From: Ostrea edulis
Lineage: Eukaryota
Assembly: GCF_947568905.1 (NCBI RefSeq)
Contig: NC_079170.1
Span: forward strand, 83,638,001-83,702,000
DNA length: 64,000 nucleotides
Direction: 5' to 3'
This document shows positions 527 through 23,925 of this stretch, in pieces; position 1 is the stretch's first letter; every line of letters begins with the position of its first letter. Made by a program: the position numbers and the translations under genes. Below the pieces are notes generated by a model, which ran no database searches, had not been told where the DNA came from, and worked only from the letters and a program-made list of their open reading frames with translations.

Positions 527-1691
527 GTTTGCCCAACTATCTATTTTGTATTGCTTGTAGGAGTTATGAGATTGATCACTGTTCGTTATCTTCACCTTGC
601 ATATGTAACATGAAAGATGGAGATGTACATGTCATGTACACTATTCAACACGACAAGGAGACGTTTCTTCTTAAATTACACTACAAACAAAAGAAAAATA
701 AAAGTGAAATCATATACAAATTATTATTGCAACGTTTAGCCATTGATTTTATCATTAAACTTTATTTCAAGAAAAGCAGAATATTTTTCTAGGAAGCTGC
801 TGTAAATTATAGTAGAACGCGATTTACTGCTAGATCAGAGTAAGTTGAAGATTTGGGGGTTCTATTCTGTAAGTGAATACTTCATTTATTTGCGTTTAAA
901 ACCAAATCAATTACAGTGTGATATACTCTAATACAGACCAGATCGTTTATTTTCACTTTAACTGATTTAATGTTAAAAATAAGATCCCACCTCTAGTGTG
1001 TCCAGGGGTCCGTGTTTGCCCAACTATCTATTTTGTATTGCTTATAGGAGTAATGAGATTGATCACTGTTCGTTATCTTCACCTTGCATACAATTCGTAT
1101 ATTTGCCTCTTTATTCGACGCAGCACATGGTTATCAAATCATGTTATGGTGATTTGTAATAGAATAATAGTCATCTATAGTGATTAGTACACTGTTTGGG
1201 AGCAACCAAAAGTGGTAACATGGTTCAATGTGAGAGGGTTTGTGCCTCTTGAAAATTTCTAATATCTAAGGAACATATTCTGAGCTGAATATACAGTGAA
1301 TCCTGGAATTGTGAATATTTCTCTGAATTTAAATGTTCAGAACACACACCCTTTTTAAGAAGTCAAACTTCCAGAATCAATATGATAAACGCTTAAAATG
1401 TGTTACTGAAACTAATTAATTCTAATTTTTATATCTATAATTTAACTTATTTGAAAGCTTTTAGGGTTACATATGGGACTCAAAGGTAGGAAAGGAACTG
1501 CCTAGATATGTGACATTGAAATTAATCAGTATTATTTGTTCATGAAATACATAAAAATATATGTTTACAAAATTCAACATTTGAGGTTGTGTTTTTGCTT
1601 TCAATCAGCTGACCTGAATTTTGTAACATCTAATTTGTATTGCTTGTAGGAGTTATGAGATTGATCACTGTTCGTTATCTTCACCTTGCAT
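527..1691 (+). mobile_element. Three very short Naiad-like 3' termini (527-602, 983-1089, 1634-1691)
   Basis: All end ...GATCACTGTTCGTTATCTTCACCTTGCAT. Further short copies lie near 4354, 8230-8480, 9130-9240, 9620, 14010-14120, 14388-14515, 23578, 25100, 27033, 27675 and 60560-60655. Confidence 0.8.
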
Positions 1692-2559
1692 AGAAAGTAT
1701 GCCTTAAAACACGTGTATGCATTGAAATGTTTTTGAAAAATATATATCTCCATCACCGAGAACAAATTCCTGTCACTAGATGAGATTGAGAGTTACACGT
1801 AGGAAACGTGACAAAGAAAATTCGGACGAATATTGTGAGATTTTAAATTGTAATCGGAATGTACTAGAGTATACACGTTATACCTTATCAATTGATTAAC
1901 ATTTTTGTATTGTTCTTTTATATGAACAACGTTGACTTTGTTTGATGTGTACAAGATACAGTTCATTTTATGTGCACCATCTCAATCTCTGATGACTGTA
2001 ATACAATACCTTATGACTTTTTTTTTATAGATTATAAACTACAGATACACTCAGGTCGCCCAATATTGGAAAATTCGTCGTCATATATTAATCATATTTT
2101 CCATATTCATCTTAGATACATAAACATTTAAACACGAAAAAGGCTAAACAAAACATGTGCCCGACATGCATATTTTATCAAGGTTGTGTTGAATTTTCGA
2201 TAGGTGTTTAAAAGTATTATTCATTTGAAAACAGTAAAACTACACCCTTACAAAAATAATGTTTTAGCTCTTAATTAGTCCATGGGTATTTTACATGACA
2301 AAGTGAATCATTTTATGCAAGAAAAATTCATTTGCCTATGTTTTTATTCTATACACCGTCGTATTTTAACGATTTGAACTTCAATATTTTATACCTTTTA
2401 CACACAGCTGTTTTTGTTTTTAGAATTACCAATTATGATCAATGCATTTCTTTTGAGTTTTTATCAGAAAAATATGTTATCCGAATTGATGTATCTTTAA
2501 CTGATGACTGCAGATGATGACTATGAATGATGGATGGTAATTCGATTCTTATTTTACAG

Positions 2560-5500
2560 CGTTTACAGCGGTGGTTGACGGGGTATGGGGACCAGCGGGA
2601 GACCCCTTCGACAGAACATATAGAGTGACTGTTAAAAACATATATAGGGTAAGGGCTTTGAAATATTATTTCAAATGACTTTTTCTCCGCACAACATAAA
2701 GGAAGGAGGTGCAAATTATGATGCACGTGAATTATTTCGTTTAATTTGATAATAGTCAAATTTCTGTTTTCGCTTGATAGCAATGCGGTTAAAATGAATT
2801 AGTGCTGTTAAGTATTTTAAGAAATTTTAGTGCACTGAGTGAATACTTAATTTGGACATGGTGTGAAATATAGGTGTTTTCAAATAAAATAAATTTAATA
2901 TATTCTCACCACATCTGTCATTTATTAGCACAACTAAGAAATTAGCAACCTAATGCATGTGTTTGTTTTCGAAGCAAACAAAATACGATTTAAAATTGGG
3001 TTAATGAGTTTACCGTCCACGAACAGATGATTGTTTGAGATATATTGTTTTGTTTGAATTTTTAGGGTTCTGATATTGTCCCGAATACAACTATTACCTT
3101 GTATGGAAGATCACATTCTTGTGGTCCAACAATCCTCGATATAAAGAAGGAGTATGCAATTTATGGTGAGTTCAAATAGGAATCAACAAATATTACCATC
3201 AACATACTATTCCATGTTTCTAGATGCAGTATACCAAGCAGCTTTTTAGATGCTGCAGGGTTTATCATTTGTAAATGATACATACTTTATTTTATAGGTG
3301 TTTGTCTTGAAAAGAAATCTAATATAATAATTTGTGAAATTTTGTAGAAGTATCAGAGGATACTTCTTTAACCATTTCATCAAGCAATTGATATCTCTGC
3401 AAATTCTAGTGTGATTCGAAAAAGTGTCGAAAACGCATAGTGATCAATCTCATAAATCCTATAATGATTTGATTAATGATTTATGTACCGTGAACTTCCC
3501 TGTGATTCAGCAACAAAGTACGGCCCTCGATTGGAAGTTGTCACCCATGAGGAAGTTCCTCCGGCCTCCATCGCCCGACTGAAGATGTACGATTGCTCCT
3601 GTCAGGTAGAAATTCTTACGTGGTTTTAGAGTACATAGGAGAGAATCAATGATTCAAGAACAAATAACGAAAATTTACGTCACAAACTTCACCAATAGCC
3701 AGTCAATATTTAATGTGTTCATTACGTAAAGCACTGTGGTAAACGGTAACCTTCTATATACATTCCCATTCGGAAATTTATGTGTGGTTTGTATGAACAT
3801 GATGGGGTCAAGGCTTATTATATTTTATGAAACGCCAGTCTACCACTGACTTTCATATTTCTATAATCCAAATCAACAGTAAACATAGCAAGAGGTCCAC
3901 AGGCCTGATGGGTATTAATTACAATTTTAGTTTGATTATTAAGTTATTGGTTTAAAAATATAAATAGCCACAAGAGCTATGAAATCTATATTTTCCTATA
4001 GTACATGTATATGTTAGATTCTAGGATTAAGCAACAGTACATAAGACTTTGTATAATAATATATCACCATTTTGGACTCACCCAATAGTGAGGACCTTGG
4101 TGGTGCGAAATTCACAATTTGAGAACATATCATTCCGTTTTTTCTAGTTTTTAAACAGTATCTGCAAAAAGAATATATCTTTCAAATTATAGATGCAAAA
4201 ATCACTGTAAAAAATTTCCTCCAACTTGGAACCAAAGCCCTTGGTCCTGACATCATGAAACTTACAATTACGGAAAAGGGCTACCTGCTTCTTCTAAATA
4301 TCTATTTAAATTAAATTTAGCATTAATTTCATTTAACAAAATATTATCAAAATATTGATCACTGTTCGTTATATTCACCTTGCATATAAGCTTTACCCCG
4401 CCCTCGAATCAGCACCAGTACCTGGGGTCATGAAATTTGCAGCTTTTGGTATAGGCGTTCCTGCTCTACATGACTTTGCATTATCATATTTGAAAAATTG
4501 ATCTTTTTTTTTTTACAGTTCTTACCCCACCCTTAACACCTTGGGGGCAGGTATCTTGTATTCTATAACATATGCCCCATTGTCTCAAAGATGTTTGGAA
4601 CGAGAATTTGGAAACAACTGAATGGGCAGTTATTGAGAAGTTAAAAGTGTTCAATTATTAACGCATGACGAACAGCTGACGACGCACTACGACGGACGCA
4701 AAACAATAGCGATAGATCCCTGTCACGTGACATATAAAGCAAATTATTTTTTCTTTGCATTCCTAACATTTACGAAAGAAATAATTCTTCTTTTGTACTC
4801 CCCACTGTACCAAAAATAATAATTTTCTCATTTCCTTGCCGTATATTATATTCCGATAATGATAAGGTTTTATCGCCTAATGAAGACCAAAATATTACTA
4901 AACGTTGCATTCTACATAAATTACAATCCACTTGCGTTAGTGGTTGATTCGTCTTCTCTAAATTATTTCATATATGTACGGCTGATTATGCAGAGGAATC
5001 TCCATGACTCTCATATCTTGTGTCCGTCTAATAAGTGCATTAATTTACATCCCAGTGGTTTCTCTATCCTCAAAATTAAAAAGTCCTGAATTTTTTTTTG
5101 CTGAAGATGCCTCTTCTGACACTTTTAAGGCTATGATTTAAAGGGGTCATTAGCATTTCCTTCAAACTATCTCGATGATTGATACAACAATGATAAGCAT
5201 CTGAGATGTTGTGATCAATGACGTTGATCGCACATCCTAGATATAATTTTGAAAGATTGAATGAAGTAAAATAAATCAAAGATATATTTTGCGGAAAACA
5301 CTAATTGCTACTTAAAGTATCGCTTTAAAAGTTGATAATTGAAATGTATGAGGAATACTTAAAACATGATTTAATCAAAGTGTCAGAAAGTCAAATGACA
5401 CGGAAACATGTCGGTGAGACTGTGCAGACAGTAATCATCTATTCGAAATCAAAAGAGGGGACCACCGTGATAACGTTAAGTACATCTTTAGTTCAGTTGT

Positions 5501-5890
5501 TCCCAGTCGTAGCTCTAACAGTCAAGAGTAGTTGGTGTATAAATCTGTCTCATCGTTTCCTTTGTGACAACTACTTCATTTCCTGAAATGCTACCCCCAC
5601 CCCCGAGAAAACACAAACGTTTATATAGTGAATTGTCTGTATATTGTGATTGCTTGTGATTTACTAGAAAACTCTTATTTTCTTTTTATTTGCTTCAACA
5701 GATCGAAATTCACAAACCTAATATGTCCAATACATTGAGGTATGAAGATTCATTGGATAAATGTATTATAACCACGCATGGCCGGGACTGCCAATTCAGG
5801 AATGGCTACTGCAAGAAAACAAATAACCTTTGTTCATGGGAACTTTTTCCTCGTGCATACCACAGAACGAACTGTGTCCAGAACGTGTGA
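2560..5890 (+). CDS. TIMP-like / NTR-domain secreted protein, partial (5' exons not located)
   Basis: Phase-consistent exons 2560-2648, 3066-3165, 3511-3605 and 5702-5890, all with AG/GT boundaries. They give AFTAVV...RTYRVTVKNIYRG...SHSCGPTILDIKKEYAIY...YDCSCQ...DKC...DCQFRNGYC...LCSW...NCVQNV*. This matches the TIMP pattern Y.V.V..vyKG / SCG / EY.I.G / YdC.C / C...CxW. A possible upstream microexon lies at 119-136. Confidence 0.75.
3885..4735 (-). mobile_element. Degenerate Helentron-like element in a TIMP-like gene intron
   Basis: Terminus CAAGAGGTCCACAGGCC and (GAC)n/GACGGACG near the other end, resembling the elements above. Confidence 0.45.
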
Positions 5891-8800
5891 AAATGCGTTA
5901 TTTACTGCTTACATGTTATTCTTAAACATTTTATTAATGACAATGGAAATATATCATACACACATCTCACCATGCCCTCTTCCTTTATTATAATTAGTAT
6001 TTCATAGAATGAATATACATCCCATATATTTATTCTGTGAAAATACCAGAAAGTCAAGGACATTTCAACTCTAAATGGTATATAGTTCAATTATTTAAAT
6101 GTTGGTCCTTGCCAAGGACACAGGCACAAGATTCATGAAACATTTTACGCTTTAGTCAGAATATGCATTTTGCGTTAAAATGTTGTATTAATCAAGTCGA
6201 TCGCCAGTCAGAAGAAACAGGTGTGTTCGGTGCGTGCTCTTCTTTTTCCTTTCATCACCAAAATTATTTATGAATCTAACGTTATCAAACACCGTTTATA
6301 CGAATGACATTTGACTTAATTTTGAATTTGTTTCTTGATTTCATGAACCTGTTTCAGCTAGAGTTTATAGAAATGTATTATTTTTCAATAATGCATATTT
6401 TTTTTACTCAACTTGCAAATATTGCATTTCATATTGCTTAAATATATCATCATTACTCAAAATCGTCCTTTGTTTACATGTATTTTGTAACGTTAGTAAT
6501 ATTTATCAAAATGTCTAGTGTAAAAATCAGGAGTAAATGAAGTCCCTTGCAGTATCGTAACTTCTTTCATTAATGAAAATGCATGTACTTTTATATCTCT
6601 ATGTACTAAGTTGCACTTTCTATGGATTCAGTATTATTCACTTCCAGATTATCGACCTTTTGATAGATCACCTGTGTAACTTTGATTAAAGGTTTCAAAT
6701 ATAGAGATATATTTAGATTTTCAAAACGCCCTGAGAGAAGTTGTGGTTTTCATCACAACTTAGTGCAAGGTGTGAAGAAGTAAACACACTTCAATGTCAC
6801 ATATATGTACACAAAAAACGTGTACCTTTTGACTCCTTCATGCTAGAAGCCCCATGATTCATTAACCAAACGATTTTTTAAAACTCAATTCATGAAGAAA
6901 AACTTACAGGGAATAATGTAACATGATTCATTGTTTCGGATAATCAGCTTGATCGTTTAACACCGACTTCGGGTTTCTAGAACAAAGAACCATTCTTGTT
7001 CGCCAGTAGCAATTTCTTACAATACAATTTAGATTATATGTTAGTTCTACGTTTGATATGCTCCCATTGACGTAATTCAAATAGTTAAACAAAATATCAG
7101 TTCCATCATATCTTTGCAATAATACAGAGGATGTTTCATATATACATATACTTTTCAAACCGAATGATTCTTTTATCTGTTTTAGATCAAGAGAATATCA
7201 TTACACAAATTTTAGAGTTAAATGTTCAATCAGATGTATCACTATATAAATCATAATATTATCTGTTCAATTAGATGTGTTATAAAGAGAAATATCAAAG
7301 TTTCAATTTTTATCAAATTCTTGCCATATATGCATGATAATGATTAAGTTGTTCATCTCTGAACTCAGATTAGCTTTTTCGTCGATCTTCCATTGAATGT
7401 AATGTCACTCCCCATTCTATGTATTTAAACATTTATTCTTTGTTTCATTCATTTCCCCACATACTTTAATAATACTTACAAGAAAGATGTTTATACATAC
7501 ATAGAATTTAACAGTAGGTTATCTCTCTTTTATTTTGCGAAGATCATCAAAATTGTCGATCAAGCGACCGAATTATTCTAGATTTTGACGTATGCACTTT
7601 GGACATTTATATATTGTATACTACGTGAAGTTATTTTGAGTTCACCGCGATGAAGTTCAAAGAACGCACTTTAAAAGTGTACATGTTATTCCGCGAAAGC
7701 CATTAATGCCATAAAGCTGTTAAGTCTACAATTATAAGTTCAGTAGCCACCAGTTCTCTACCAGTGCACGATTAAGACTGTGTCGTTCTTTGTGACTTTA
7801 TTTTAATTTGGTTTGCAAAAATGTGTATATTCAGTTTGCTTTATATCATAATATGTATAATTGTAATGGATTTTTTATGACAAAAAACAATTTGTTTCCA
7901 CATTTCGATCATCTGTACACAAATTAATGTTCAAATGTTATTTACGTATCTGGCATTTGCATTGTGCTATACATGAGGCTAAACTATGTCCAGTCCTGGC
8001 TATATACTGTATTGGAATCAGCAATACAAAATGTTTAAAAAATTCAAGACTCATTTTATGACGAGAGCATTTGTTTGTCGTCTCTAAGCTGATCGACATC
8101 TCCTAATCATTAATACATGATTCTGTCTCTGGAATATTCTGGGATCCGTGTCGGTCCTACTCTTGATTTTGTATACTTTATGGAAGTTATTAAATTGATA
8201 ATCAACTTTTCAAAATGAAAATAACGAAGAGTAATAATTTCAATAGATGATTAGGGCAATCACAAACCCCAGAACACACTATGGCTGTTGGCGCGAGTGC
8301 CTAGGAGGAGTAAGCATCCTCTGTTGGCCGGTCTCATCCGTGCTATATCTTAATCAGATAAACGATGTAATATGCATTCAATGTTACTAGATAAAGATCT
8401 GCCTATAAAATTGGTATGAACCCGTCAGAGACCATTGGACATATTGTGAATTGGACTGTTCGTTATCTTCGCCTTTCTAAGGACCATATAATCTCAGGGA
8501 TGCAGACATTAAACGAGATTGTTGAGATCCAATGTATCATTGACTTATATGTCAGTAACCTACCTCGATTTATAAACTGATCATACGTAGAACATGATCT
8601 TACATATAGAATGATTTGGGACATGAACACCAAATGTAGGTGATAATGGATTATGAATATTTCTACATACATGTATGTATGTAGCATAATTTAGATGATA
8701 AATAGACAACCAATCTCATACATTTCATTAGGTGATTTATTTTTATGTTTCTTTTTCTAAAGTTTCCAAACGTTCTACCACAACTTACTAAAATGATTTA

Positions 8801-10978
8801 CAGATGGTTAGTTGAAAATCGGAAACACTAATTGGATAGGCGTGTGTATTCGTCGCTAATGCTGAGGGAAAATTGTATGGAAATATTCTAATTATACATA
8901 TTCCGTTGGTTTTAATGCGGGAAAGACCAATCTACTCAGTCATTTGAATTGACTTCAAATTACAGAATGTAAGGGACTTCATCATGTTTAGTGTTTCCGT
9001 AGGGATGATGGGGTGGTGGTAATTGTTGAAAACAGAGAATATTAATTCATAAGACATTTTGAAAAAATACAATCATTTAGCGAAGTGGAGTAGATTAATC
9101 TGTTATGAAAAATGTGTATGGAAACCTCAAAGATAATCGAACAGTGGTCAATCACATAACTCCCATAAGGGATACAAAATTAAGAGTTGGGCAAACACCT
9201 GGATGTAACAAAGGTGGGATCAGGTGAGCTTTATATCTTGATCAGGTAAACAAGTTTATTTGCGATCAAATTCAGCCTACCAGCTGTGAAAAACTCAGAC
9301 AGCAATTGACGCAATGCATGGGTACGCAATACATCTTAACGTTTCAATTCTCGAGAGGGACGTTAAACAAGATACAATCAATCAATCTTGACGTTCCTCA
9401 ATCGGGGTATTTGCCGTACATGACGTCACACCTAAAGGCATACATTATTCTAATGCAACTGGTTTGAAATCTGCTTTTTTGCTAATGCTTTGAGATCTGG
9501 CCTGGATATTTTAAAACTTTCACCGTACTCATGCTCAAACTCGGCCATTTTTGGTTTGAGTACAACTCTAAGCAAACTCCAAAGCATACTCGAAAAATAT
9601 TTAGAATGTACGAACAGTGATCAGTCTCATAACTACTGGAAGCAATGCAAAATAGATAGTTGGGCAAATATGAACGATATGATAAACTTTTGTTCCGAGT
9701 TCACTGGTGTATATGGATTCAACATAATATCAATTAATTTGATAGATAGAACGTCGTCAATATACTAGTATCTACATATGTAGTTGAAGGCCACAACTAG
9801 AGATTTTTTCTTCTCGTGTAGAAGTTTTTGAATAAATGTTGCCTTGTAAGAATAATAATAGATGTTTTTTAATAAAGGAGCACAAATCGTGTCCATGGAA
9901 ATTCAAACAGTATGCATGTTGGAAGACCTTGCGGCCGATTCATTAACCGATCGTAGATCGTAAACGTACGATTACGTTTGTGATCACTTTGACGCGCACG
10001 TATAGGAGCGTTTCACGAAACCTATCGTAGACTTGACACTTACCATTGCGATTTAAGTCTGACATTTTAGAACTCCTTTCTCTATGGAGATAAATCTAAA
10101 ATTAATCCTTCCATGGAAAGAAATATTCATTCATTATTTCCTCATGGTTTTAAACATGATTATCCCAATAATCTGCAGTAACTCATGGATGTTGTCAACA
10201 AAAGTAGTGGAGATGTTGAGCTCGATCTCCAGTGTAACGTAAAGAAGAATCCCTAGAGTGTTAAAACAATTGAAAGAATAATTTTATTGACTTCATGTAA
10301 CTCAGTTACAAGTGTGTGTGTGTGTGTGTGGGGGGGGGGGGGGTTGGATGATATAAGAAATAACATAAAAGATCTACATTTTATAGAATTCTAAATGCCA
10401 TGCATCGATCTGCTCAAGTGAGTCAAGTTTCCATCAATATGACCCTAAGCAAATGATATTCTAAGGATAAGAAAATAAGAAGTAAATGAAATAATATTAA
10501 TAAAAAAAATATGATAATAAAATGAAAATAAAATCGCACACAAGTATAGACAATTTTATCCTGTATCAAACACATTTCAAACCATGGCTATATACATGTA
10601 TTCGTTTAATCATTGTTGTAAAATACGCTACAACACTTGTCTATTATATCATTGTAGGGAGGTAACCTTTGTCCAGAATATGTCAATATAAAGTACATGT
10701 TATGAAAAGCACACTGGGGAATAAATTAAATTAAAATCTACTGTCTACTTCTGTACTACAAATGGTAACGTGATCGGAATACACTGTATATGCCGTAATA
10801 TATATAAAAAAACCAACATAGTATACTACACGGAGTGATAAGTGAAACTGAAACTGAAAAGTTCGAATAACAAAGTCCAAAACATACATAGTGATATACA
10901 CAGCCATATATGTCTCATCATATATTATTTTCAAAGTACTGTGTTTGGTACTTTTCTACATTAATACGTAAATACACG

Positions 10979-11069
10979 CATTTCGGTTGAGCATCACTGA
11001 AGAGACATTATTTGTCGAAATGCACATCTGGTGCATCAAAATTGGTACCGTATAAGTTTTACATTATGA
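10979..11069 (+). ncRNA. Solitary retrozyme fragment with hammerhead (probably inactive)
   Basis: Hammerhead at 10991-11034 with a broken stem III palindrome (ATGCACAT). Confidence 0.7.
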
Positions 11070-11457
11070 GCATTTGAAGTGATTTGCAAAATTTATCATT
11101 CTAACTGTAACATTATATTTTATTCGTTTTGTAGACGTTGATAAGACGATTTAAGTTGCCAAAAACAAAATTCGTTTATTGAGAATGCTGCAATAATATA
11201 TCACCATAAAGAGACACATAAGATTTCAGAAAAAATCCAGATACCATTCAAAGACTAGGTCACAACTTTCATATAGTGTATTTTTATCAACCCAACTGCA
11301 GATCAATCTCATACACTACACTATATCATGATTGGGGAATAATTAATTCATCATACAATATAACAACAACAAGAAGGCAAAATCAGTGTACATGTGTCTT
11401 CTGTGTAATCCTGTTTTCTTTCAGAAGTATGAACTACTGTTTGCAATCAGTGGATCC

Positions 11458-14400
11458 TTATACAATGGATGGCTCTAGATATTGACAAATGCACTTTCTA
11501 TGAAGATATGTATTATGTCGATTGTACTTAAACTCTTCCAGGGTTATCCAAGAAGCCAGTGCTGTCCGATTCCTATTTATAAAGTTGATGATGAGGTCAT
11601 GTGCTTTTTTCTAAAAAGTAAAAAAAAAAAGAACACTTTAACAACTACCGTCAGTTGGCAAAAATGGGAATGGATAATTATATTACAATATCCGATAGAA
11701 TGCCTTCATTAACTTCCGTGACCCAACACAAGAATTAACGAGGAAATGTTAAGTACGTTAATCACATTTCGTAAATGTGGTCAAAACATTGAAATTAGGT
11801 TTCCAACATGTTTCATCGAAAACCTGAAAACAGCATTCTCTTTTAACATTACCTTAATCGTTTCCTCATCATCATAATGCCGCTTCAGGGCGAATATACA
11901 AAATTTCTGAAAAAATAGTATATAGATATATAAAGCAGAAGGAAACTATAAAAGGACAACAACTTTCGTCCCCCACCCGAGGTTAAACTCACGACCAGTA
12001 AAACCAAAACCTAACAGCGTGTGACCAGCGAGCTAGAGCGCTCGACCATCCAGGCAAATCAAAGTACTGTTTGAAAATAATGGGATTGTCATCACGATGT
12101 CACAGTCTACAAGATGATCAATAATGGAAATAAAATATACTTAAATGTTAAAGGATAGAGCAAGATACACACTATATTTAAGCTATTATATAAAACAAAA
12201 TCAGAGATTGATATGAACTAGATAAACATAACCGTTTTAAGTGAAGGCATATTCAATATAAAGAATAGAGAAATGCACTATATATATTGATACCCACTTA
12301 AGACTTTACCTGGGACCTGTGGAAACAAAGCCTGACAGCAAAGTTGGCAACTTCTTGTTATTTAAGATTTTATTCCCTTCAGAGCATTTCAGTTTATCAT
12401 GTACCCAACAAAACAGAAATGGATTTCACTCCTAATGTTAGTCAATACAGTGTCGACCAAAATTAGTCTTACCTTGCATGGATCTGTATCATAATTTCGT
12501 AGACCGATCTGTCGTAGACAAAGACATATTAGCACATGTGGGATCTTTTTCTATTTCAGAATATTTTCAATAGTTGATCAATGAACTATCGCAATATTGA
12601 AATACTAATTTCCCCACAATGCGGTTTTATTCTATTATGTATCTAAACTTCATTTGACAACAAAATGTATTGTTCATACTTCTCCTGCAATATTCATAAC
12701 TGGCAGGACGTTCAGTGTTTGGAAGTATTGAATCAAATATTGCCAAACAATATCGTCTATTTCTTTCTCTCCCTGCAATATGTCAAATCAAAGAAGGTAG
12801 AAGGAAAACTGATTGAATACAAAATTACATAATTGCAAAAAGTAACCTAGCTCGATTTGATCAACTAAATAAACACTAGCATAAACGCTTACAGAACATT
12901 TATGAATTTTGTGTACTTATTTTCGCGAAGTCAAAATTCAGCGCAATTGGATGATAAACGAACAGTGATTAATCTCATAAATCCAATATGAAAAAGCAAA
13001 ATTGACCGTACGACAAACTCAGACTCACATCAAAGATGGGTTCAGGAGTCTAGGAAGAGTAACATTCCCTACTCACCTATCAGACAAATCATAACCTCTA
13101 TAAACAGGTGAAAATAATGAACAGTGATCAATCTCATAACTCCTATAAGGAATACAAAAACGATTTGAAAAAACACGGACTCCTGGATATGCGGCAGGTG
13201 GGATCAGGTTCTTAGGAGGAATGATTATCCCCTGTCGACCGGCCACAACCGTTGTGAGCCCTATATCTTGTTCAGGTTAACAGAGTAATCCGTAGTCAAA
13301 ATCAGTGTGCCAAGAAGGGTCTAACAATCGTTATAAAATACGTCAGACAGCATTTGATCCAATGATAGGTTGTGTTGGCTGGATCGATATAACGACCATA
13401 GAATTTACATAATACTGACTTTAAACGATACTGTCGAAACCTCTATAACGTCAACGTGTTTGTCAGTAGCCTGCTTAAATCTAAAAACTGATCATACGCA
13501 GAACAAGCTTTTGTGTATCGAGCAGTTGAGAGATATAAACACCATATACAGGTGATAATGGAACATTGCTACATAGATTTAGGAAACTGAAGATGGAGAA
13601 GCTGAAATCATTACGTTTGTCATACTGTTGAGTTGTTAGTCTGCCGTTGATATCTATTTTCAATAAAATATCTAAGTATTAAACTTACCTTTTTGTTATA
13701 CTTAGCGTAACATCCAATAATGATAGTTACTGTGATAATGGGAACAACAATAAGCACCGTACACAATCCCCCCAAACTTCCCTCTGTGATATCACCCTCA
13801 ATGACAAGATATAACAGCAATGGAATCAAAGACATAGATGACGCTCCCAGAACGGCAAAACACCACAGAAGGCGAAAGAATATAGGATCGTGGAGAAAAT
13901 ACCATCTCTTGAATTTGCTGGAATTCACTTCATCTAAGATTTTACAGCACAATGTGTCAATCTGTAAAACGAAAATTTTATCAAATAGTTTTGTTAAGAA
14001 AATACATGAAAGGTGAACATAACGAACAGTGATCAATCTTATAACTCCTATAAGCAAGATAAAGTATAGAGTTGGGAAAACACGGACCCCTCAATATACC
14101 AGCGGTGGGATCAGGTGTAAGCATCCCATGTCTACCAGTGATGTATATCTCAAGCCATTGTTAAATTTCAGATGAATTCATATTTATAGACATTGACTTA
14201 TCAAATAATAAATTCATTTCAACAAGAAGTCAAATTTTGTTTTAGTAATGTTGATTTCTTATGTAACTTTATGTTCGAAAGGTCTAGATTGGTTAGGGGA
14301 AACTAATTCTAGTTGAACCAATTTATCCAGAGCTAAAATAGACAGAGTTTTCGCTACTATTAGCTTACTAAATTTTCAGACAAATAGATGCAAGGTGAAG

Positions 14401-17400
14401 ATAACGAACAATGATCAATCTCATAACTCCTACAAGCAATACAAAATAGATAGTTGGGAAAACACGGACCCCTGGACACACCAGAGGTGGGATCAGGTGC
14501 CTAGGAGGAGTAAGAATATGATGAAAAGAAAAAGTGATCAGAGAAATCAATGAACAATACTTTTGCCCGGACATCACATTAATTTTATTTAGTTGAAGTA
14601 TATTTAGTTGATAAGAATACTGGAATACATTCAGTCACCAACGAAATCATCAGCTATTGTCTTCGTGCTGTTGAATATAAGAAATACTGTGCTATTCACA
14701 GCAGTGATAAACGTTACTAATAGCTGAAATTATGTGCAATGACACTTTAATAATCAATCCAGAATGTTGATGCCAACACGAGAATCCATTAAGGATGGTA
14801 CTGGAGATACCTTATCTTACACGAGAACTTAATGCAAGGTGAAGATAACGAACAGTGATCAATTTCATAACTCCTACAAGCAATACAAAATAGATAGTTG
14901 GGCAAACACAGACCCCTGGACACATCAGAGGTGGGATCAGGTGCCTAGGAGGAGTAAGCATCCCCTGTTGACCGGTCACACCCGCCGTGAGCCCTATATC
15001 CTGATCAGGAAACGGATTTATCCGCAGTCAAAATCAGTGTGCCAAGAACGGCTTAACAATCTGTATGAAACACGTCAGACAGCATTTGACCCAATGTGAG
15101 GTTGTATTGACGAACTAGATCGTTATAACGACCATAGAATTTGCGAAATGCTGACTTCAATCGAGACTGTTGAATCCCTGTACCATCAACTCGATTTAAA
15201 AACTGACTATACCTAGAACAAGCTCTTGCATATCGAATCAATTGAGATATATAAACACCATATGCAGGTGATGATGGAATATTGTTACATAAATATGGGA
15301 AGTTGACGATGGAGAAGCTGAAATCATCCCGTTTGTCATACAGTTGAGTTGTCAGTTTGCCGTTAATTTCTACTTTCAATAAAATATTTAAGTATGAAGC
15401 AGAAGTGGACGACTCTGTGGTGTCCTTTATTTCGAGCTCACAGGGATATATCAAATCGACATATGAATGAAAGCTATCATTGTTAATAGACAAAACGTCA
15501 TCGATATATCTAAAAGTCGAATTGAAGGTCACAGCGAGAGATTTTTTCTTCTCACGTAGAAGTTTTTGAATAAATTCTGTTTCATATGAATATAAAAACA
15601 GGTCAGCTAACAAAGGAGCACAATTCGTGCCCATGGGAATTCCAACAGACTGTTGGAAGACCTGATCACCAAAGACCACGAAGATATTGTCAATGAGGAA
15701 CTCTAGCATATTTTTTATTTCAACTTCAGAGTACTTGTGCGTGGAATCAGAGTGGTGTTTAACAAAGTAAGTTTTTGAATGACTGATCACTAGATATGAA
15801 TATTTCCGTTTTCCGTTTTTGTTGAAGGAGCAACTGTCTATGATGTCAAAAAGTCTAGTCTTTAATTTATCGTGAGGAATGGTCGTGTATAGTGTTGAAA
15901 AGTCAAAGGTTTTAATAATAATAATAATATAATAATAAAAGTACACTTATATAGCGCCTTATCTAAAAATACTCTAAAGCGCTGTACAACATACTAAAAT
16001 TTACAATTGATAATTAAAAGAAAAACCATAGAATACACAACGAATAATTCTTACACATATAAGCTATAATGCTATTGATTTGGGAAAAATTCTGTGATTT
16101 CAAGTTTACTAAAAGTTCTTTAGAACTTTTTAGAATGCACATTTGATTAACACCACTTCTGGCATATGTAGTCGCACAGTAAGTTTGAAGTTTCTCCTTC
16201 ACAGCTGTTAACATTTTCGTGAGGAGCAAAGCTATGGCGAAATGACTCGTGAACGTCGAATCATGAGAATAACAGTTGAGCAAGTGTTTACATATAATTT
16301 AGGTATATGAATATGAAAACTAGTAATTTTAATTCGCGAGTGAATATTCTCGCAAAATTACGCGATAATAAATTATTCGTGTATATTTAGGAATTTGCGA
16401 CATCCTACATAGCATTAATTAATCAAATATGTAACTGCATTACATCAGAAATAAATGCAATCATATCATGCATGTATATAACAACCTTTTGGGATCTAAG
16501 TTGATCTGATATATTCGAACGCTTATCTGTGTCTTCTGAAAAAGTGATTTTTGGAATACCATAGTCCCACACTTTAATCCTCCGTATAACACGTAATACG
16601 GATCCGTTACGTAATCCTATAGAAAATACGGAGAGAAACATCATTTGTGTATGTAAGATAATACATGTAACTATATACAGATAACAACGGTATACTCTAC
16701 ATTACAAAGACACCAACACGACTGGGAAAATAAGAGATATAATTAAAGTCTAACCTTGAAAGGAGATTACGTTTGGTAAAATGCATGTGTCAGACGCTGA
16801 AAAAGAGAGAAACTTCGTTAAATTTTGATCTGTAAACTATTTTTGAATATTTTAAAACAACTTTTAAGTTTAGACTGCTAGTCAAGGATGATAAGATAAA
16901 GATACCAAACAGTTATCAATATCGTGAATCCTATACAGTCTACAAAATTCAGAGTAGGGCTAACACGAATACCTGATCATCCCAGAGGTTGGATCAAGTA
17001 TATAATAGAAGGATTAAGCATACCCTGTCATCTAGTCACACCCATCGTAAGATCTATGTCTTGATCGGACAAACAGAGCAATCCGTAGTCACAATCAGTG
17101 TGCACAGTACGGTCTCAATTAGTATGAAACATATCAGAGAGTATTTGACTAAATGACAGGTTGTATTGGTAAATCCGATCGTTATGACGTCTATAAAATT
17201 TGCAAAATTCTGAATTTAAACGAGAATGTTGAAACCACTGTACATAACATCAACTTATGGGTTAGTAGCCTTCCTCCATTTAAAATACTGACATATACAG
17301 AACACACTCTTGCGTATCCAATCATATATTACATCACATATTAGTCTGACGTGTTTCATACCAATTGTTAAGCCGTTCTTGGCACACTGAGTTTACCTGC

Positions 17401-18133
17401 GGATAACTACATTTACCTGATCAGGATATAGGGCTCACGGCGGGTGTGACCGGTCAACAGGGGATGCTTACTCCTCCTAGGCACCTGATCCCACCTCTGG
17501 TGTGTCCAGGGGCCCGTGTTTGCCGAACAATCTATTTTGTATTGCTTGTAGGAGTTATGAGATTGATCACTGTTCGTTATCTTTACCTTGCATTAGTGGG
17601 ATGAGATGTTTCTAATTGCGCAGGTACGGGCCACGCGCCGGAGGTACTCCGTGCATTGATCTAGAACCAAAAGTGAAAGTTAAGGTATGATAGTATACTC
17701 TACCTCCAAAAACACAGGCTTCGTGTATTTTACTGGCGATATCTGTTCCATCAATTGTTGCATCAACATAGTTAATGGTTTGTAATTCTCTCGGCATTTC
17801 TGTTTTCTCAAGTAAAACTGGAATCATGCTATTCTCGCACTGTTTATGTGAAGCCGTGATTCCATATAAAATTTCAGAACTGCACCACTGATTTTGTTTA
17901 AAACTTTCGGATACAAGATAGACAATTTTCATGCTTTTTTCGATACCATTTAGAATATTGTCCATCACTGTAACCCCAGGAGTGAAGTCTCTCACGTGAC
18001 ATAGACATTTCAGTTGATATTTTTCTTCTAACTCATTTAACAACGAGAGTGCAACTTCCTCATCCTCATGACAAAACGATAAAAATATCTGATAGTTTTT
18101 TCCGTATGGAAGTGGAATTGGTGTTATATCCAT
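11458..18133 (-). CDS. TIR-domain protein with two transmembrane helices and a Cys/His-rich C-terminal domain (403 aa, 7 exons)
   Basis: Exons 18133-17704, 16616-16486, 13961-13689, 12772-12680, 12550-12473, 11906-11853 and 11610-11458 join in frame (1212 nt). TIR motifs: YQIFLSFCHED, LKCLCHVRDFTPG, IEKSMKIVYLVSESF, WCSSEI, IPVLLE. There are two hydrophobic segments in exon 3, and the C-terminus carries CLCLRQ and RH..LHRKCICQY. Exon 2 has a weak donor (GTTGTT) and is the least certain. Confidence 0.8.
11968..12056 (-). mobile_element. tRNA-derived SINE head
   Basis: Degenerate A- and B-box on the minus strand, with no complete cloverleaf. A similar head is at ~30755-30820. Confidence 0.4.
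13110..13680 (-). mobile_element. Degenerate Naiad-like PLE 3' fragment in a TIR-gene intron
   Basis: KIDINGRLTTQQYDKRNDFSFSIF (ORF 13481-13663) plus the terminus. Confidence 0.75.
14832..16240 (-). mobile_element. 5'-truncated Penelope-like retroelement (Naiad-like), RT plus 3' terminus, interrupted
   Basis: RT motifs KTFDFSTLYTTIPH, QSVGIPMGTNCAPLLADLFLY and FRYIDDVL. The ORF ends HTDC* with no downstream GIY-YIG domain. A ~260-bp 3' end finishes ...TTATCTTCACCTTGCAT. It is split by an insertion at 15917-16066. Confidence 0.85.
15917..16066 (-). mobile_element. 5'-truncated LINE/SINE 3' tail with (ATT)n, nested in the PLE RT
   Basis: The minus strand reads TGTACAGCGCTTTAGAG...AAGGCGCTATATAAG...(ATT)n. 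It is flanked by TAAT at 15913-15916 and 16067-16070, and removing it restores QINSI-KTFDF. A related tail is at ~51055-51120. Confidence 0.65.
16880..17593. mobile_element. Two Naiad-like 3' fragments in inverted arrangement (old minus copy ~16880-17300, younger plus copy 17342-17593)
   Basis: Both match the family 3' region. The plus copy ends ...CTTTACCTTGCAT. Confidence 0.7.
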
Positions 18134-18333
18134 GGTAAATACTGGTTCAGGTTTACCTAGGACCCCTCTTCTAAACAATGTTTAAGGTACACACATTACC
18201 TTATGGAATAAATCCAATATATTACGTGGAATTATAAATAGAAGTGTTGGGTATCTGGAATTTCCAAGTTCTAATTCCGTATACCTTCCTATTGTGACTG
18301 GGAATTTTATAAAACTAAAACGGAGATTTGAAT
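18134..18333. promoter_or_regulatory. Putative bidirectional promoter with a kB-like site
   Basis: 200 bp separate two divergent ATGs. TGGAATTTCC sits at 18256-18265 and a degenerate GGGAATTTTA at 18300-18309. Confidence 0.45.
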
Positions 18334-21300
18334 ATGTTAGTCCTGAAAGTTATCCACACCTTAATGTTTGGAATATTTGCTTTCTTCTATACTGGAAATT
18401 GTGAGGTATGTAACCTAAACTTAAAGTCGATTAATTTGTATGTTAAACATGCATTCACTAATTATTTTTTTTCATATTGCATGGTCTTTATCATAAATAA
18501 TAGGATTTAGAAAAGATGACATACTGCGATCATTTCATTGCTTAGAGATAACAATCGTTTTTGTAGTTTGTTTTTTTACGCATTTCATATCTAAAAATAC
18601 TTGTCTTTATAATTGCATGTACCATTCTAAATTTAAATATCAGATTCCAAATAATTTTTAAATCTAAAATTAGCGCTTTTGAATTAACAAGAAGTTCACG
18701 GGTATGCATACATGTACATATATGAATATCTGGTTATTTAGCCCACTCTTACATGTAGATTCGAATGTACTATTACATCTTAAAGATATAGAACTCAAAA
18801 TACAGGGTATCCAGGTTAGCGGATGTACAAACAATAAACCAAATGATACAAAATTTTACTCTCTATTCTAACATATTCATACATAAACATGACCTTTGCA
18901 AATTTAAAGGTATCAATATCCTATATTTAAGGTAACGTATTGTTATTTCTTTTAAAGGTCTCGTCTAGTACATTTAAATGTAAGTTTCCAAAAGGAATTT
19001 TCAATGGAGTGTGTGTTTTCTGTCCAGCAGAAACATTATATGAATTGACATGGAATTTGGGATACAAATATTTGCCTCAATATTGGTATCAACCGGTAAC
19101 ACATTTAACTTTCCATTCCAATCACAATTGTGTTAGAACATGTTCTCAGGAGAAACCGTTCATATCCAGAAGACAGTGTGTATCAAACTGTCCAGGAAAA
19201 TCGAGTCAGACCGGGAATACAAAATACTGCAAAGAAGAAGGTCTGAATGATGGCTTCTGTGACGTCAACAACTGTCCACTCCCCAAATACAAATGCTATT
19301 ATATGCAATGTTTTAGAAAATGTCCAGCCTTTACTGTTGCCTACAATAATAGTTGCGTAATTGAGTGTTTCAATGATAAACCGTTCATTCTTCATAACAA
19401 CTGTGTACGGCAGTGTCGGGAGCAGGACGTGATTGAAAACGGAGTTTGTCGCAAGAACTGTTCGATCGATCACTTTTTGTCTGGCAGATATTGTGTTGAT
19501 AAATGTCCAGAAAACCAACCCTATATCGATGGCGAACGTTGCCTTTCAGAATGCCCACATTTTAAAAAGATTCAAGATAACAGATGTGTAAAAAGTTGTT
19601 CTCATGATCGTTTCCTTGCTGGGAGAGTTTGCTTTAAACGATGCCCCTCTGGACTCTATGAACACAAACATGGTTGTGTTGCATCTTGTCCCAACAATGT
19701 ATTATTGGAGAACCAAACATGTGTTTACAATTGTTCTAACGGGCTTCTTGTTTCGGATTCAAAATGTGTAGCAGCATGTCCATCTGGACATTTCGTCTAT
19801 GGATCTGAAAGCATATGTACAAAAACATGCGATGGTTTTACATTTTATAACAACAGCATGGCGTTTTGTTTACAAAAATGTCCTGAAGGAACAGCTCGAA
19901 GGAATCAAACTTGCGTGAATAGTTGCCCAAGAAGTCGACCATTCCTACATGCAGAATCATGTCTTACTAAATGTCCGAATTCATCTAGATATGTTTTAAG
20001 AAATATAGGTCCACTCGATAAGTTATTTTTCAGATGCACAGAAAGTTGTCCAAAATACGTCTCTTTGGTAAGCAACATGTGCATTGATTCTTGTTCCCTG
20101 GGTGAAGTATTATTCCGTAATATATGTCAATCACAATGTCCTTTGTCGGACCCTTACCCTGTCCATGTACCAGCAACAGACAGATATCATATAGATTTCA
20201 CAACATCATATGACATTCAAAAACCAATATCTGCGCTAGTGATGTGTGCTGAGGAATGTCCATTTAATTTTGTGTTGGATAATAATGAATGCTTTGCTGA
20301 CTGTCCAAATTCATCAAAAATCATGGTATATAATGAAACGTGTTTTAGCGAGTGTCCTTTCCATCATCCCTTCATCGTTTCAAACGGTACCAGGAAAACT
20401 TGTGTCAGTGAATGTGACAAACAACATTTTCAAATGCATTGTGTGAATAAATGTCCAGAACCGCATAGATTTCTGCTTAATAAGGAATGTGTCAACTGCA
20501 AAGAAAAAGGATTGTACGAAGATGGCAACACGTGTGTGGAAGCATGCGAGTTTCTTCATTACGACGATCGATGCTATTATGTTTGTCCCCAAGAAGTGCA
20601 ATTTGTTTTCAATGGAACTTGTTCCAGATCTTGCCCCGTAAGTCTACCCATGGTAGATGAACAGGTACATAAAGGACATATAGTTTCAGTATGTGTCCAC
20701 GGCTGTCCGAAAGATAAGTTTATTTTTGGAAACCACTGCGTATCCAGTTGCCCCCAAAACAAAAGATTTCCAATGAATAATAGATGTATGTCCTGTCAGG
20801 ACATTGGAAAATATGATGATGGATCTAAATGTGTAGATGTATGCCCCGAGTTACATCAAAACTTTCACTGCGTATATAGTTGCCCAGATTTAAAGGTTTA
20901 CAAAAATACATGTGTGCGGGATTGCCCAACCAGTGCACCTTTCACAACAGATCGGAATTACATAACGTATTGTGTTACACATTGCTCAGAGGGTTTATAT
21001 ATTTACAATGACAGGTGTGTGTCTTCTTGCCCATATGGAAGTAATGTTCTATCAAACAACACTTGCGTACAGAAATGTCCCCGAAATGCCCCATTCACAC
21101 AGAAATTAGGTGGTGTAACGCTAGAATGCTTGAAACGTTGCAAACAAAATCATTACCAACATGGTTTTACGTGTTTAGAACGATGTCCAGATGGATATTA
21201 TGTATATAAAAGTAAGTGTGTTCAAACCTGTCCACAGGACGCCCCTTATATGTACAATAAATCGTGTGTCAGTACATGTTGGTCCTTAAAGCTAGGAATG

Positions 21301-23925
21301 AATTGCTATGATAAATGCCCTTCAGGAAATTATCGATTTGAAGATAGGTGCGTTTTGAGTTGTCCACTTGGAGTCCCGTACAAATATCAAGGAGAATGTG
21401 TTCAGACCTGTCACAATTATACAATAAACATGAATTGTTATGATCAATGCCCTGCTGGATTAATAGGATATAAGAAAAAGTGCATCCTGGAATGTCCAAA
21501 AGAAGCAATGTTTTATCATAACGGTGAATGCCTATGTAAGTGTCCAAATGACACAATTGTAATCAAAACAACATGTTACGATTCTTGTCCAGGTGGAAAG
21601 TATGAATATCAACGGAAATGTATCGAAAAGTGTCCCAAACGTGCTCCATATATTGAAGAAAAAAAATGCGTACAGTCCTGTACAATCTTAACAGATGGAT
21701 TCCGCTGTTATGACCAATGTCCCAGTCGGAAATACAGTTTCCGAGGAAAGTGTGTCAATAAATGTCCTCCGGAGGCTGCTTTTATGAATGGAAAATCATG
21801 TGTAGCAGCATGCCCTCTTTACCATGATGGAAATTTATTTTGCATAAAGAAATGTCCACAAAATTATGTTCCACATGGAAAGGAATGTAAAGATGAATGC
21901 CCAAATGATTCACCATTTTACGCTTTCACATTTCTAAGCGAAAAACGATGCACGAAAAAATGTTCCGCGTTTGAGTTAGCAGCGGAGAACAAAAGTTGTA
22001 TCTTGCAGGACAAATGTTCTGGCTTTAGAGACGGTATGTGGTGTCTAAGCAAATGTCATTTGCACAATTTTATTCTTCGGTCTGAGGATAAAAAGTACTG
22101 TCATCCATTGGTACCCGTTTATATTGCCCTCATCATCTTAACTGTGGCAGTGATTATCAGCATAGCCTTTGGGATGAGAATTATATGTCACTGTTATCAT
22201 AATCGACAGGTAAGACACACTTATTATTTCTAATTTCCCTGTGGATGATAATTGAATGTATTTTTGCTTTTGTTGTTATTTACAAATATGAAGCTTGAGT
22301 TAATGATTATTTCCACAGATAAGTATCTTAAATTCTTTACCACTTACGAATGGTGGTAATTAAATTAATGTTGTTTATGAGACATAGTCATTTATTGTAA
22401 AATCGATTTACTGAGATATTTTATTGACGATAGACACTAACGGCAAACAAACAACTCGACTTTGTAATAAATGGGATGAGTTCATTCTCTCCTTCTTCAA
22501 CTTTCCATATTTATGTAGCAATATTCCATTATCACCAACGTATGGTGTATATATATCTCAACAGATTCGATACGCAAGAGATTGTTATGTGTATGATCAA
22601 TTCTAAATCGAGGAAGGCAACTGACAAAGCTGACGGTGTAGGGGTTTCAACAGTCTCCTTTAAAATCAATGTATCGCAAATTATATGGTCATTATAACAA
22701 TCTAGTTTGCCAATACAATTTATCATTGGCTCAAATGCTGTCTGCCGTGTTTTATACCGATTGTTTGGCAGTTTTTCGCACACTGATGTTGACTACGGAT
22801 GTCTCCGTTTCCCTGATTAAGATATAGGCTCAGGGCGGGTGTGACCGGTCGACAAGGGATGCTTACTCCTCCTAGACAACTGATCCCACCTCTGGTATAT
22901 CCAGGGGTCCGTACACGTGTTTGCCTAACACTAATTTGCATTCCTTATAGGAGTTATAAGATTGATCACTGTTTTTTGTCTTCTCCTTTCATTCAAAGGA
23001 TGAATTTGACTCCACTTTTTGACAATCTGTTTTTCCTTATAATAGCTCTAGCAAGTTTATTGTTATTTCGGATTTCAAACATTTCGGTTGAGCATCACTG
23101 AAGAGACATTATTTGTCGAAATGCGTATCTGGTGCATCAAAATTGGTATCATATAAGTTTTACATTACGACTCTTGGGTCCAGGCTTCTGCTGGTGGACT
23201 GTTAGTCCCCGGGGGTCTCTACAGCCCAGTAGCTAAGTACTTCGTTACTACCTTGAAAATACGGATGTATATTTAATTGCTGTGATAAAATTTAGAAATT
23301 CATTTCAAAACTAAGGATTATCTCCTTCATGCATAGCTCTTATCTTTAGACGAATTTGACTCCACTTTTTTAGCACTCTGTTTTGCCTACAAAAGCTCTA
23401 GCAAGTTTATTGTTATTTCGTATTTCAAACATTTCGGTAGAGCATCACTGAAGAGACATTATCTGTCGAAATGTGCATCTGGTGCATCAAAATTGGTACC
23501 GTATAAGTTTTAGATGTAGATATTTTTTTTCCACTTACACTCTGCACAAACTGGCATAAAGCGGGATCCCATTTAGAATGCAAGGTGAAGATAACGAACA
23601 GTGATCAATCTCATAACTATTTCTATTAATCTGAGGTAAAGGATACTCAGGAGACTGATTTGGTCTAATCTCAACACAGCTTAGTTCGAAAGTAGAGAGA
23701 GTTTAAAATATGCAATTGCTTGCACGAGCATATCCATATTAATTAGGAGTAATATGATATTTTTACATATTTATATGAATAAAATGTTGCTACTTTTGAA
23801 TGATTATTTCAGTTCCTTTATATAATCTTTTATATACTTTATTTCAGGTAGAGAATAAAGATAAATATCAAACGCTAGCAGATGAAAACAACGATAAATT
23901 CGATGAAGATATCGCCCTCATTTAA
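18334..23925 (+). CDS. Large furin-like cysteine-rich-repeat type I membrane protein (~1133 aa), no protease domain
   Basis: Signal-peptide exon 18334-18405 (MLVLKVIHTLMFGIFAFFYTGNCE|GTATGT). A 3252-nt exon 18958-22209 holds dozens of CxxxCP repeats and the TM segment VYIALIILTVAVIISIAFGM, ending CAG|GTAAGA. Probable last exon 23848-23925 (VENKDKYQTLADENNDKFDEDIALI*). All junctions are phase 0. Confidence 0.85.
22424..22990 (+). mobile_element. Degenerate Naiad-like PLE 3' fragment in an intron of the Cys-rich gene
   Basis: DTNGKQTTRLCNKWDEF...YGVYISQQIRYARDC plus the terminus. Confidence 0.75.
22997..23512 (+). ncRNA. Retrozyme copy, ~1.5 units, two hammerheads
   Basis: Same unit as at 39352. 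Hammerheads at 23092-23135 (stem III ATGCGTAT) and 23442-23485 (ATGTGCAT), 350 bp apart. Confidence 0.8.

Follow-up and report, generated by a model that had tools for sequence, protein, structure and literature searches.

The analysis of a 64,000-nucleotide stretch of Ostrea edulis DNA (NCBI RefSeq assembly GCF_947568905.1, contig NC_079170.1, positions 83,638,001 to 83,702,000 of the forward strand; referred to below as the window) located a gene for a TIR-domain protein between positions 18133 and 11458 (window numbering) of the minus strand. Head-to-head with it, on the plus strand, lies a gene for a large Cys-rich protein. The DNA is of animal type and AT-rich, its GC content being about 0.30-0.43, and the best matches of its proteins are oyster proteins. 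The product of the minus-strand gene combines an N-terminal TIR domain, a predicted two-helix membrane hairpin and a conserved C-terminal domain. As argued below, it may be the signalling half of a split receptor whose sensing half is encoded by the neighbour.

Structure of the TIR gene

Only one long open reading frame (ORF), 17615-18181 on the minus strand, is present in the 11458-18133 interval, and it encodes the TIR domain. Exons were placed by tblastn of six Crassostrea homologues against the window and their boundaries were then read from the sequence. This yielded eight coding exons with a total length of 1212 nt, encoding a protein of 403 residues and ending in a TAA stop codon. All seven introns are bounded by GT-AG and no internal stops are present. 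The protein aligns over its full length with Crassostrea proteins at 57-59% identity, rising to 73-74% for exon 1. The original prediction, made from the letters of this DNA alone, had proposed a model of seven exons. It begins (start codon, 18133) and ends (final base of the stop, 11458) exactly where our model does, but homology to Crassostrea gives eight exons:

17704..18133, minus strand: exon 1, start codon at 18133, TIR domain, residues 1-143, with RDFTPG and WCSSE, GT donor (Pfam TIR_2, 6.6e-19)
16755..16796, minus strand: exon 2, 42 nt, phase 1-1, linker with ASDTCILPNVISFQ (tblastn with P0028, P0033 and P0036; AG/GT sites)
16486..16616, minus strand: exon 3, 131 nt, linker beta-hairpin region LRVIRRIK...ITFSED, ending in ..RSQK (tblastn, AG/GT; beta-hairpin from the P0028 model)
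13689..13961, minus strand: exon 4, 273 nt, phase 0-0, pre-membrane helix and both predicted transmembrane helices (tblastn E about 1e-19; hydropathy)
12680..12772, minus strand: exon 5, 93 nt, helix that opens the C-terminal domain (IVWQYL..) (tblastn, AG/GT)
12473..12508, minus strand: exon 6, 36 nt, IGLRNYDTDPCK, including the conserved residues Tyr329 and Cys334 (codon 12476-12478) (homologue alignment)
11853..11906, minus strand: exon 7, 54 nt, KFCIFALKRHYDDEETIK, including Cys338 (tblastn, homologue alignment)
11458..11610, minus strand: exon 8, last part of the C-terminal domain, containing His385 (11515-11517), Cys393 (11491-11493) and Cys395 (11485-11487), TAA (tblastn E about 1e-16)

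The start of exon 6 needed separate consideration. In-frame acceptors are also present at 12544 and 12550, and use of either would extend the exon upstream of 12508. The motif CLCLRQ, which had been listed among the features of the protein tail, could be coding only with the acceptor at 12550. All homologues fit 12508, where the pyrimidine tract is also better, and CLCLRQ most likely belongs to the intron; at this position the homologues read VVILNYDTDPCK, without an insertion of corresponding length. The two other predicted tail motifs, PCKKFC (333-338) and RHNTYLHRKCICQ (384-396), are both encoded. A post-membrane tail is present as predicted, and with the acceptor at 12508 it is 115 residues long rather than about 125.

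Exons 4-7 are all in phase 0-0, which is consistent with database isoforms that skip exon 4, 5 or 7. Isoform X3 of C. gigas LOC105328572 (P0002, 319 residues) skips exon 4 and so has no membrane hairpin, while homologue alignment shows exon 5 to be skipped in P0031 and exon 7 in P0030 and P0035. The 411-residue Crassostrea form P0028, with the full order of TIR, two transmembrane helices and C-terminal domain, is encoded by a single ORF, unbroken by introns, on 1.8-3.8 kb contigs from five runs. These contigs represent spliced mRNA, since the genomic genes span 6-42 kb.

Type of the TIR domain

The ORF at 17615-18181 matched both Pfam families above their curated cut-offs: TIR_2 (PF13676) with 69 bits against a cut-off of 28 (6.6e-19) and TIR (PF01582) with 57.2 bits against 21.3 (2.4e-15). 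This places the TIR domain first, as had been predicted. It begins at residue 14 and contains the box motifs YQIFLSF, RDFTPG (BB loop, residues 48-53) and WCSSE. RDFTPG is the scaffold-type RDFxPG motif of TIRs of the Toll-like receptor (TLR) and MyD88 type.

Comparison with the sequences of solved structures in the PDB gave matches to TLR6, TLR1 and TLR2 (3e-13 to 8e-13), MAL (2e-11), Hydra TRR-2 (7e-10), oyster TIR-STING (1.5e-9) and MyD88 (2.5e-7). Plant TIRs that hydrolyse nicotinamide adenine dinucleotide (NAD; the enzymes are called NADases below) matched at 1e-3 to 1e-2, and the CRISPR-associated Cat1 TIR fell within the weak range of 3.5e-4 to 1e-2. SARM1 was not matched at E <= 0.01 in the same comparison. 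The sequence similarity of the oyster TIR to scaffold TIRs far exceeds that to NADase TIRs.

The Glu in WCSSEI, to which attention had been drawn as the counterpart of a catalytic residue, is Glu87 (codon 17873-17875), and all 13 family members in the alignment have it. Eight of the 13, the window protein included, also have the Trp that stands four positions before it; in the Crassostrea orthologues this Trp is replaced by Leu or Met. The caution already attached to this Glu was justified: TLR1, TLR2 and TLR6 have it, and TLR1 and TLR6 keep both Glu and Trp. As these TLRs are non-enzymatic, Glu87 is barely informative on NADase activity.

Membrane hairpin and topology

The N-terminus contains no hydrophobic signal sequence, and hydropathy analysis located two hydrophobic helices at residues 232-255 and 264-286; both features agree with the original prediction. 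The layout is not that of a TLR: the TIR starts at residue 14 without a signal peptide, no leucine-rich repeat (LRR) was matched and two predicted transmembrane helices follow the TIR. An AlphaFold2 (AF2) model of P0028 (predicted local distance difference test score, pLDDT, 83) places helices at residues 227-255 and 261-309, and its linker forms a beta-hairpin, modelled with confidence, at 164-185. The loop of the membrane hairpin is the acidic octapeptide EGDITEGS, and Lys and Arg residues flank the hairpin on both outer sides. Given the positive-inside rule, these basic flanks together with the lack of a signal peptide suggest that both termini, and hence the TIR and the C-terminal domain, are cytosolic. 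The basic flanks and the acidic loop are thus consistent with the topology proposed earlier.

C-terminal domain

The C-terminal domain comprises 115 residues (289-403) and is of the alpha/beta type. In 28 sequences from bivalves and gastropods, about 20% identical, His385, Cys393 and Cys395 are invariant, while Tyr329 and Cys334 come close to invariance; family alignments against the window protein retain the Cys/His set at identities of about 20-25%. Conservation of the Cys and His residues, a proposed check, was thus borne out for Cys334, His385, Cys393 and Cys395. It failed for the second Cys of CKKFC (Cys338), which is restricted to the clade of Crassostrea and the window protein. Because four near-invariant potential ligands are present in a domain predicted to be cytosolic, zinc binding is plausible, and the Cys3His set (Cys...His...CxC) probably holds a structural zinc ion.

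A thioredoxin-like reading of DTDPCKKFC was considered and rejected: its second Cys is not conserved outside the clade just named and no standout match to a thioredoxin fold was obtained.

Structure prediction gave the C-terminal domain a confident fold (pLDDT 87.8; predicted template modelling score, pTM, 0.81) composed of a helix, a beta-hairpin and four more helices. The profile and structure searches proposed earlier for this part of the protein were performed, and no solved fold was matched. Foldseek found no match for the model in the PDB (best E 0.96), an exhaustive VIA-align search gave generic helical matches with a best Z of 4.5, a profile of the domain returned only noise from PDB sequences, and Pfam matched neither the separate exons nor residues 146-319 of P0002. 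The predicted fold thus appears novel relative to solved structures.

Family and distribution

A search with the TIR ORF identified Crassostrea and Saccostrea proteins of 65-75% identity, LOC105328572 isoform X3 among them. The non-TIR part of this isoform (P0002) then retrieved full-length relatives of 376-417 residues in C. gigas and C. virginica, each of them annotated as "uncharacterized". These share a common plan: an N-terminal TIR, a linker, a two-helix exon and a C-terminal domain of about 115 residues ending in ..RHNTY..QKKCICQ. A profile of the hairpin and C-terminal part matched 53 of 1.84 billion representative proteins. Sources were checked for ten of the 53, of which eight were named, all being mollusc proteins labelled "uncharacterized" or "hypothetical". 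Named bivalve sources were Saccostrea cucullata, S. echinata, C. virginica, C. gigas, Pinctada imbricata, Mytilus californianus and Mercenaria mercenaria, and the gastropods were Gigantopelta aegis and Haliotis asinina. All ten profile matches scanned against Pfam carried an N-terminal TIR. The protein thus belongs to a family that has the same architecture across bivalves and gastropods.

At one C. virginica locus (L013, 1-5707) two TIR-hairpin paralogues with products of 558 and 479 residues stand in tandem, and a short Cys-rich gene of 306 residues lies between them on the opposite strand. This arrangement is a local duplication of the module.

Resemblance to TMEM268

The model of the C-terminal domain was compared with predicted structures. 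It matched two clusters, an arthropod DUF4481 cluster (template modelling, TM, score 0.66 over 108 residues, root-mean-square deviation 3.4) and a chordate cluster of 416-residue proteins, every member of which has a TIR (TM 0.64 over 106 residues). The full-length model again placed this chordate TIR cluster from the ESM Atlas at the top, with 246 residues aligned. Judging from these models, the combination of a TIR with this C-terminal fold may also occur outside molluscs. When residues 158-411 were compared by language-model features, the top three matches were DUF4481/TMEM268 clusters, sharing 187-192 of 256 features; their scores of 0.86-0.87 lie below the level of 0.9 at which the tool itself sees more than a lead. 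With DUF4481/TMEM268 excluded, the best score dropped to 0.76. We regard homology of the hairpin and C-terminal part to TMEM268 as likely, and the whole sequence following the TIR would then be a TMEM268/DUF4481-like module.

Human TMEM268 has transmembrane helices at 104-126 and 130-152, inside its DUF4481 region (38-328), and its part 104-342, made up of the hairpin and the C-terminal part, binds integrin beta4 (ITGB4), a single-pass receptor, and protects it against degradation (PMC6748091). It also binds CD11b and slows the lysosomal loss of this protein (PMC11169502). A literature search found no paper joining "DUF4481" with "TIR"; the search excluded the bivalve TIR catalogue of Gerdol et al. 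2017, which possibly lists the architecture.

The divergent neighbour

Upstream of the TIR gene, on the opposite strand, the following features were located:

18134..18333, no strand: 200 bp between the divergent start codons, presumed bidirectional promoter (sequence reading)
18334..18405, plus strand: putative exon 1 of the neighbour, 24-residue signal-peptide-like start MLVLKVIHTLMFGIFAFFYTGNCE, GTATGT donor (sequence reading)
18958..22233, plus strand: main exon of the neighbour; furin-like Cys-rich repeats (about 1090 residues) are followed by a single C-terminal transmembrane helix and about 20 residues of tail (Pfam Furin-like, 2.5e-23)

Splicing from the consensus donor of exon 1 to 18958 would be in frame, and the ORF of 1097 residues is intact. 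The short distance between the two start codons implies a very compact bidirectional promoter, as far as can be judged from sequence.

We examined the genomic surroundings of eleven family members, which with the window make 12 loci. A homologue of the Cys-rich gene was found upstream and on the opposite strand in eight of the eleven, or nine of 12 with the window. In those loci that were searched whole, Cys-rich matches occurred only in this position and never downstream or in introns. The loci with the divergent pair span three divergent paralogue clades, Pinctada and Haliotis:

L006, C. gigas (TIR protein P0032): Cys-rich gene with 42% identity to the window copy
L007, C. virginica (P0033): Cys-rich partner split into three ORFs
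L016, C. virginica (P0036): Cys-rich gene with 43% identity (range in C. virginica 41-43%)
L013, C. virginica (P0089): short Cys-rich form of 306 residues
L014, S. echinata (P0066): annotated gene of 1149 residues
L015, S. cucullata (P0045): unannotated ORF, E 9e-103
L010, Pinctada (P0078): annotated furin-like gene
L011, Haliotis (P0086): E 2e-53

Identity of the neighbour to the window copy is about 41-43%, then 29%, then about 25-27%, and that of the TIR gene in the same order about 57%, then 37%, then about 22-25%. Since the former falls in step with the latter, the two genes seem to have been duplicated and to have diverged as a pair; as related sequences have a common history in any case, this is no more than suggestive.

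At L007 the three unannotated ORFs of the Cys-rich partner (4865-8179, minus strand) encode 686, 202 and 277 residues; this copy may be frameshifted or decaying beside an intact TIR gene. At L016 (1-5130) a DJ-1/PfpI-like gene is located beyond the Cys-rich gene.

Repeats in the introns

Intron 3 of the TIR gene contains an open frame of 297 residues (15056-15946, minus strand) with a weak match to RVT_1 (1.5e-5, below the cut-off), and a second reverse-transcriptase-like fragment is present at about 13484-13678. Both are retroelement debris. Copies of a short repeat, in both orientations, were found at 13072-13276, 14363-14634, 14792-15027 and 17416-17615, with the translation ..LTPPRHLIPPLVCPGVRV..LLVGVMRLITVRYLHLA. 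In contigs of RNA-labelled runs from other molluscs the repeat copies reached a summed depth of up to about 8e4, and the exons between the copies had none. The repeat looks like a short interspersed element (SINE) or a miniature inverted-repeat transposable element (MITE) common to molluscs.

Interpretation

The reading that we prefer, to which we would assign a probability of roughly 0.55, is that of a membrane-anchored TIR adaptor forming the signalling half of a split receptor, with a docking TMEM268-like module, a scaffold TIR and the neighbour as partner. The TMEM268-like module would dock the TIR protein onto the membrane and tail region of a single-pass receptor, and the TIR would nucleate TIR-TIR assemblies with MyD88-like adaptors without hydrolysing NAD. 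The Cys3His set would carry a structural zinc ion. The product of the divergent neighbour, which has a large Cys-rich ectodomain, one membrane helix and almost no tail, would be the likely partner, so that the two genes would encode the sensing and the signalling halves of the receptor. One gene encodes a chain apparently devoid of signalling parts and the adjacent gene a chain that lacks a sensing part, and the two have stayed together through duplications and in different mollusc classes. Of the two roles suggested in the original prediction, a membrane-anchored adaptor is better supported than an NAD-consuming effector, the TIR being nearest to those of TLR6, TLR1, TLR2, MAL and MyD88, at E values from 3e-13 to about 7e-7, and possessing the RDFxPG motif.

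Several results weigh against this reading. Four RNA or RNA-like runs examined over 11830-17829 had depth on the intronic repeats only and zero on exons clear of repeats, and when the TIR exon was searched for by itself, no RNA run was found to contain it. The proposed check of the splice junctions therefore gave transcript evidence in neither direction, and because depth on the clear exons was absent the junctions rest on homology and splice signals. In Mytilus, Gigantopelta and Mercenaria no convincing neighbour was found within 10 kb upstream (tblastn E 6e-5 or worse). Where the genes are adjacent, adjacency speaks for co-inheritance and perhaps co-regulation and says nothing of binding. 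The link to TMEM268 depends on predicted models and embeddings, with both sides of the comparison predicted, and its feature scores stay below the tool's level of 0.9 for more than a lead. The Pfam DUF4481 profile (PF14800) matched none of 18 members at E <= 10, in a scan where the HMMER filters discard most matches above 0.1, and a word-indexed search with a broad 17-sequence profile returned oyster proteins only. As to the zinc ion, known zinc-finger families gave no significant match, the best being a zf-LITAF-like match in one of the 18 members (E 0.058). Finally, Glu87 and the upstream Trp, which are required for NADase activity, are both retained in the window protein.

This last point leads to the possibility that the protein is an NAD-consuming effector, in which membrane-clustered TIRs would assemble an active site with Glu87 and either use up NAD or produce a signalling nucleotide, in the manner of SARM1, plant TIRs and bacterial TIR effectors; the hairpin and C-terminal domain would control oligomerisation. 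Membrane-tethered TIR effectors occur in bacterial defence, and the presence of Glu87 in all 13 aligned members, of the Trp in eight of them including the window protein, and the weak matches to plant NADase TIRs and Cat1 (3.5e-4 to 1e-2) would fit such a role. Matches to scaffold TIRs are better by about ten orders of magnitude, however, with SARM1 unmatched; the BB loop is of the kind usually seen in TIRs of the TLR/MyD88 type, non-enzymatic TLR1, TLR2 and TLR6 have this Glu and Trp as well, and the Crassostrea orthologues have Leu or Met for Trp. We consider an enzymatic role improbable. It is very improbable that the gene in the window is a paralogue that is silent or in decay, its open frame being incidental. 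The lack of RNA depth on its exons, the transposon debris that fills its introns and the partner split into three ORFs at one C. virginica locus could be so explained, but eight exons are open, the splice sites of all introns are canonical, every invariant residue is kept and the neighbour, too, is intact with its 1097-residue ORF.

A more serious competitor, although still an unlikely one, is a membrane TIR adaptor or decoy that stands alone. Such a protein, located on an organelle or the plasma membrane, would tune canonical TLR signalling by bridging like TRAM and MAL or by inhibition like SIGIRR, and the head-to-head arrangement would reflect a shared promoter or synteny. A TIR resembling those of TLRs, MAL and MyD88 is what this would require. 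The C. gigas isoform without the membrane exon (P0002) suggests that the TIR and C-terminal domain may act in soluble form, and three of 12 loci have no neighbour within 10 kb. The pairing nevertheless persists over deep paralogue clades and from bivalves to a gastropod, for which inertia alone is a poor explanation. The two products are also of opposite build: in the neighbour, an ectodomain and one membrane helix are followed by almost no tail, and the TIR protein shows the reverse.

Should the split-receptor reading hold, it may be extended to a two-chain pattern-recognition receptor at least as old as the common ancestor of bivalves and gastropods, with the DUF4481-type hairpin module as a general clamp that holds single-pass receptors by their membrane and tail region. 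We offer this wider proposal tentatively and think it somewhat less likely to be right than wrong. If true, the clamp would explain mechanistically how human TMEM268 acts on integrins. A true link to TMEM268 would in itself place DUF4481 in a functional context outside mammals for the first time, and would suggest that the module serves to dock receptors. TIR proteins are very numerous in molluscs and their roles obscure, and this family offers a concrete and testable wiring; in aquaculture species the pair would also be a candidate for pathogen recognition.

Comparison with known systems

SARM1, plant TNL proteins and bacterial NADase TIRs share with the oyster protein the Glu at the catalytic position and the upstream Trp. 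They differ from it in that sequence similarity is marginal or absent, the oyster BB loop is of the scaffold type, and ARM and SAM domains are missing from the oyster protein. The likeness to TLRs, MAL (TIRAP), TRAM and MyD88 lies in the TIR sequence, the RDFxPG BB loop and the conserved Glu, and with MAL and TRAM the protein also shares being held at the membrane. Unlike these proteins it has neither an LRR ectodomain nor a death domain, its predicted anchor is an integral hairpin as opposed to lipid binding or myristoylation, and it contains an extra conserved Cys/His domain.

With human TMEM268 the oyster protein has in common two adjacent predicted transmembrane helices separated by a very short loop (eight residues in the window protein) with cytosolic parts on either side. 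The C-terminal fold may be shared too, to judge from the predicted models and from the language-model features, in which DUF4481/TMEM268 clusters come first. TMEM268, however, has no TIR, and the Pfam DUF4481 model misses the mollusc proteins.

A parallel to the proposed pair is the bipartite TLR of Hydra, in which membrane TIR proteins without an ectodomain (HyTRR-1/2) were proposed to partner a separate ectodomain protein, HyLRR-2 (PMC6321704). The TIR of HyTRR-2 is among the PDB matches of the oyster TIR (7e-10). The Hydra TIR is C-terminal to a single membrane helix and the partner carries LRRs, whereas the oyster TIR precedes a hairpin of two helices, its proposed partner is furin-like and Cys-rich, and the genes are divergent neighbours. 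The oyster TIR protein would expose only its eight-residue loop, and the neighbour would supply an ectodomain of about 1090 Cys-rich residues with one transmembrane helix. By analogy, the HyLRR-2/HyTRR-1 pair may be taken as a precedent for a split Toll-like receptor.

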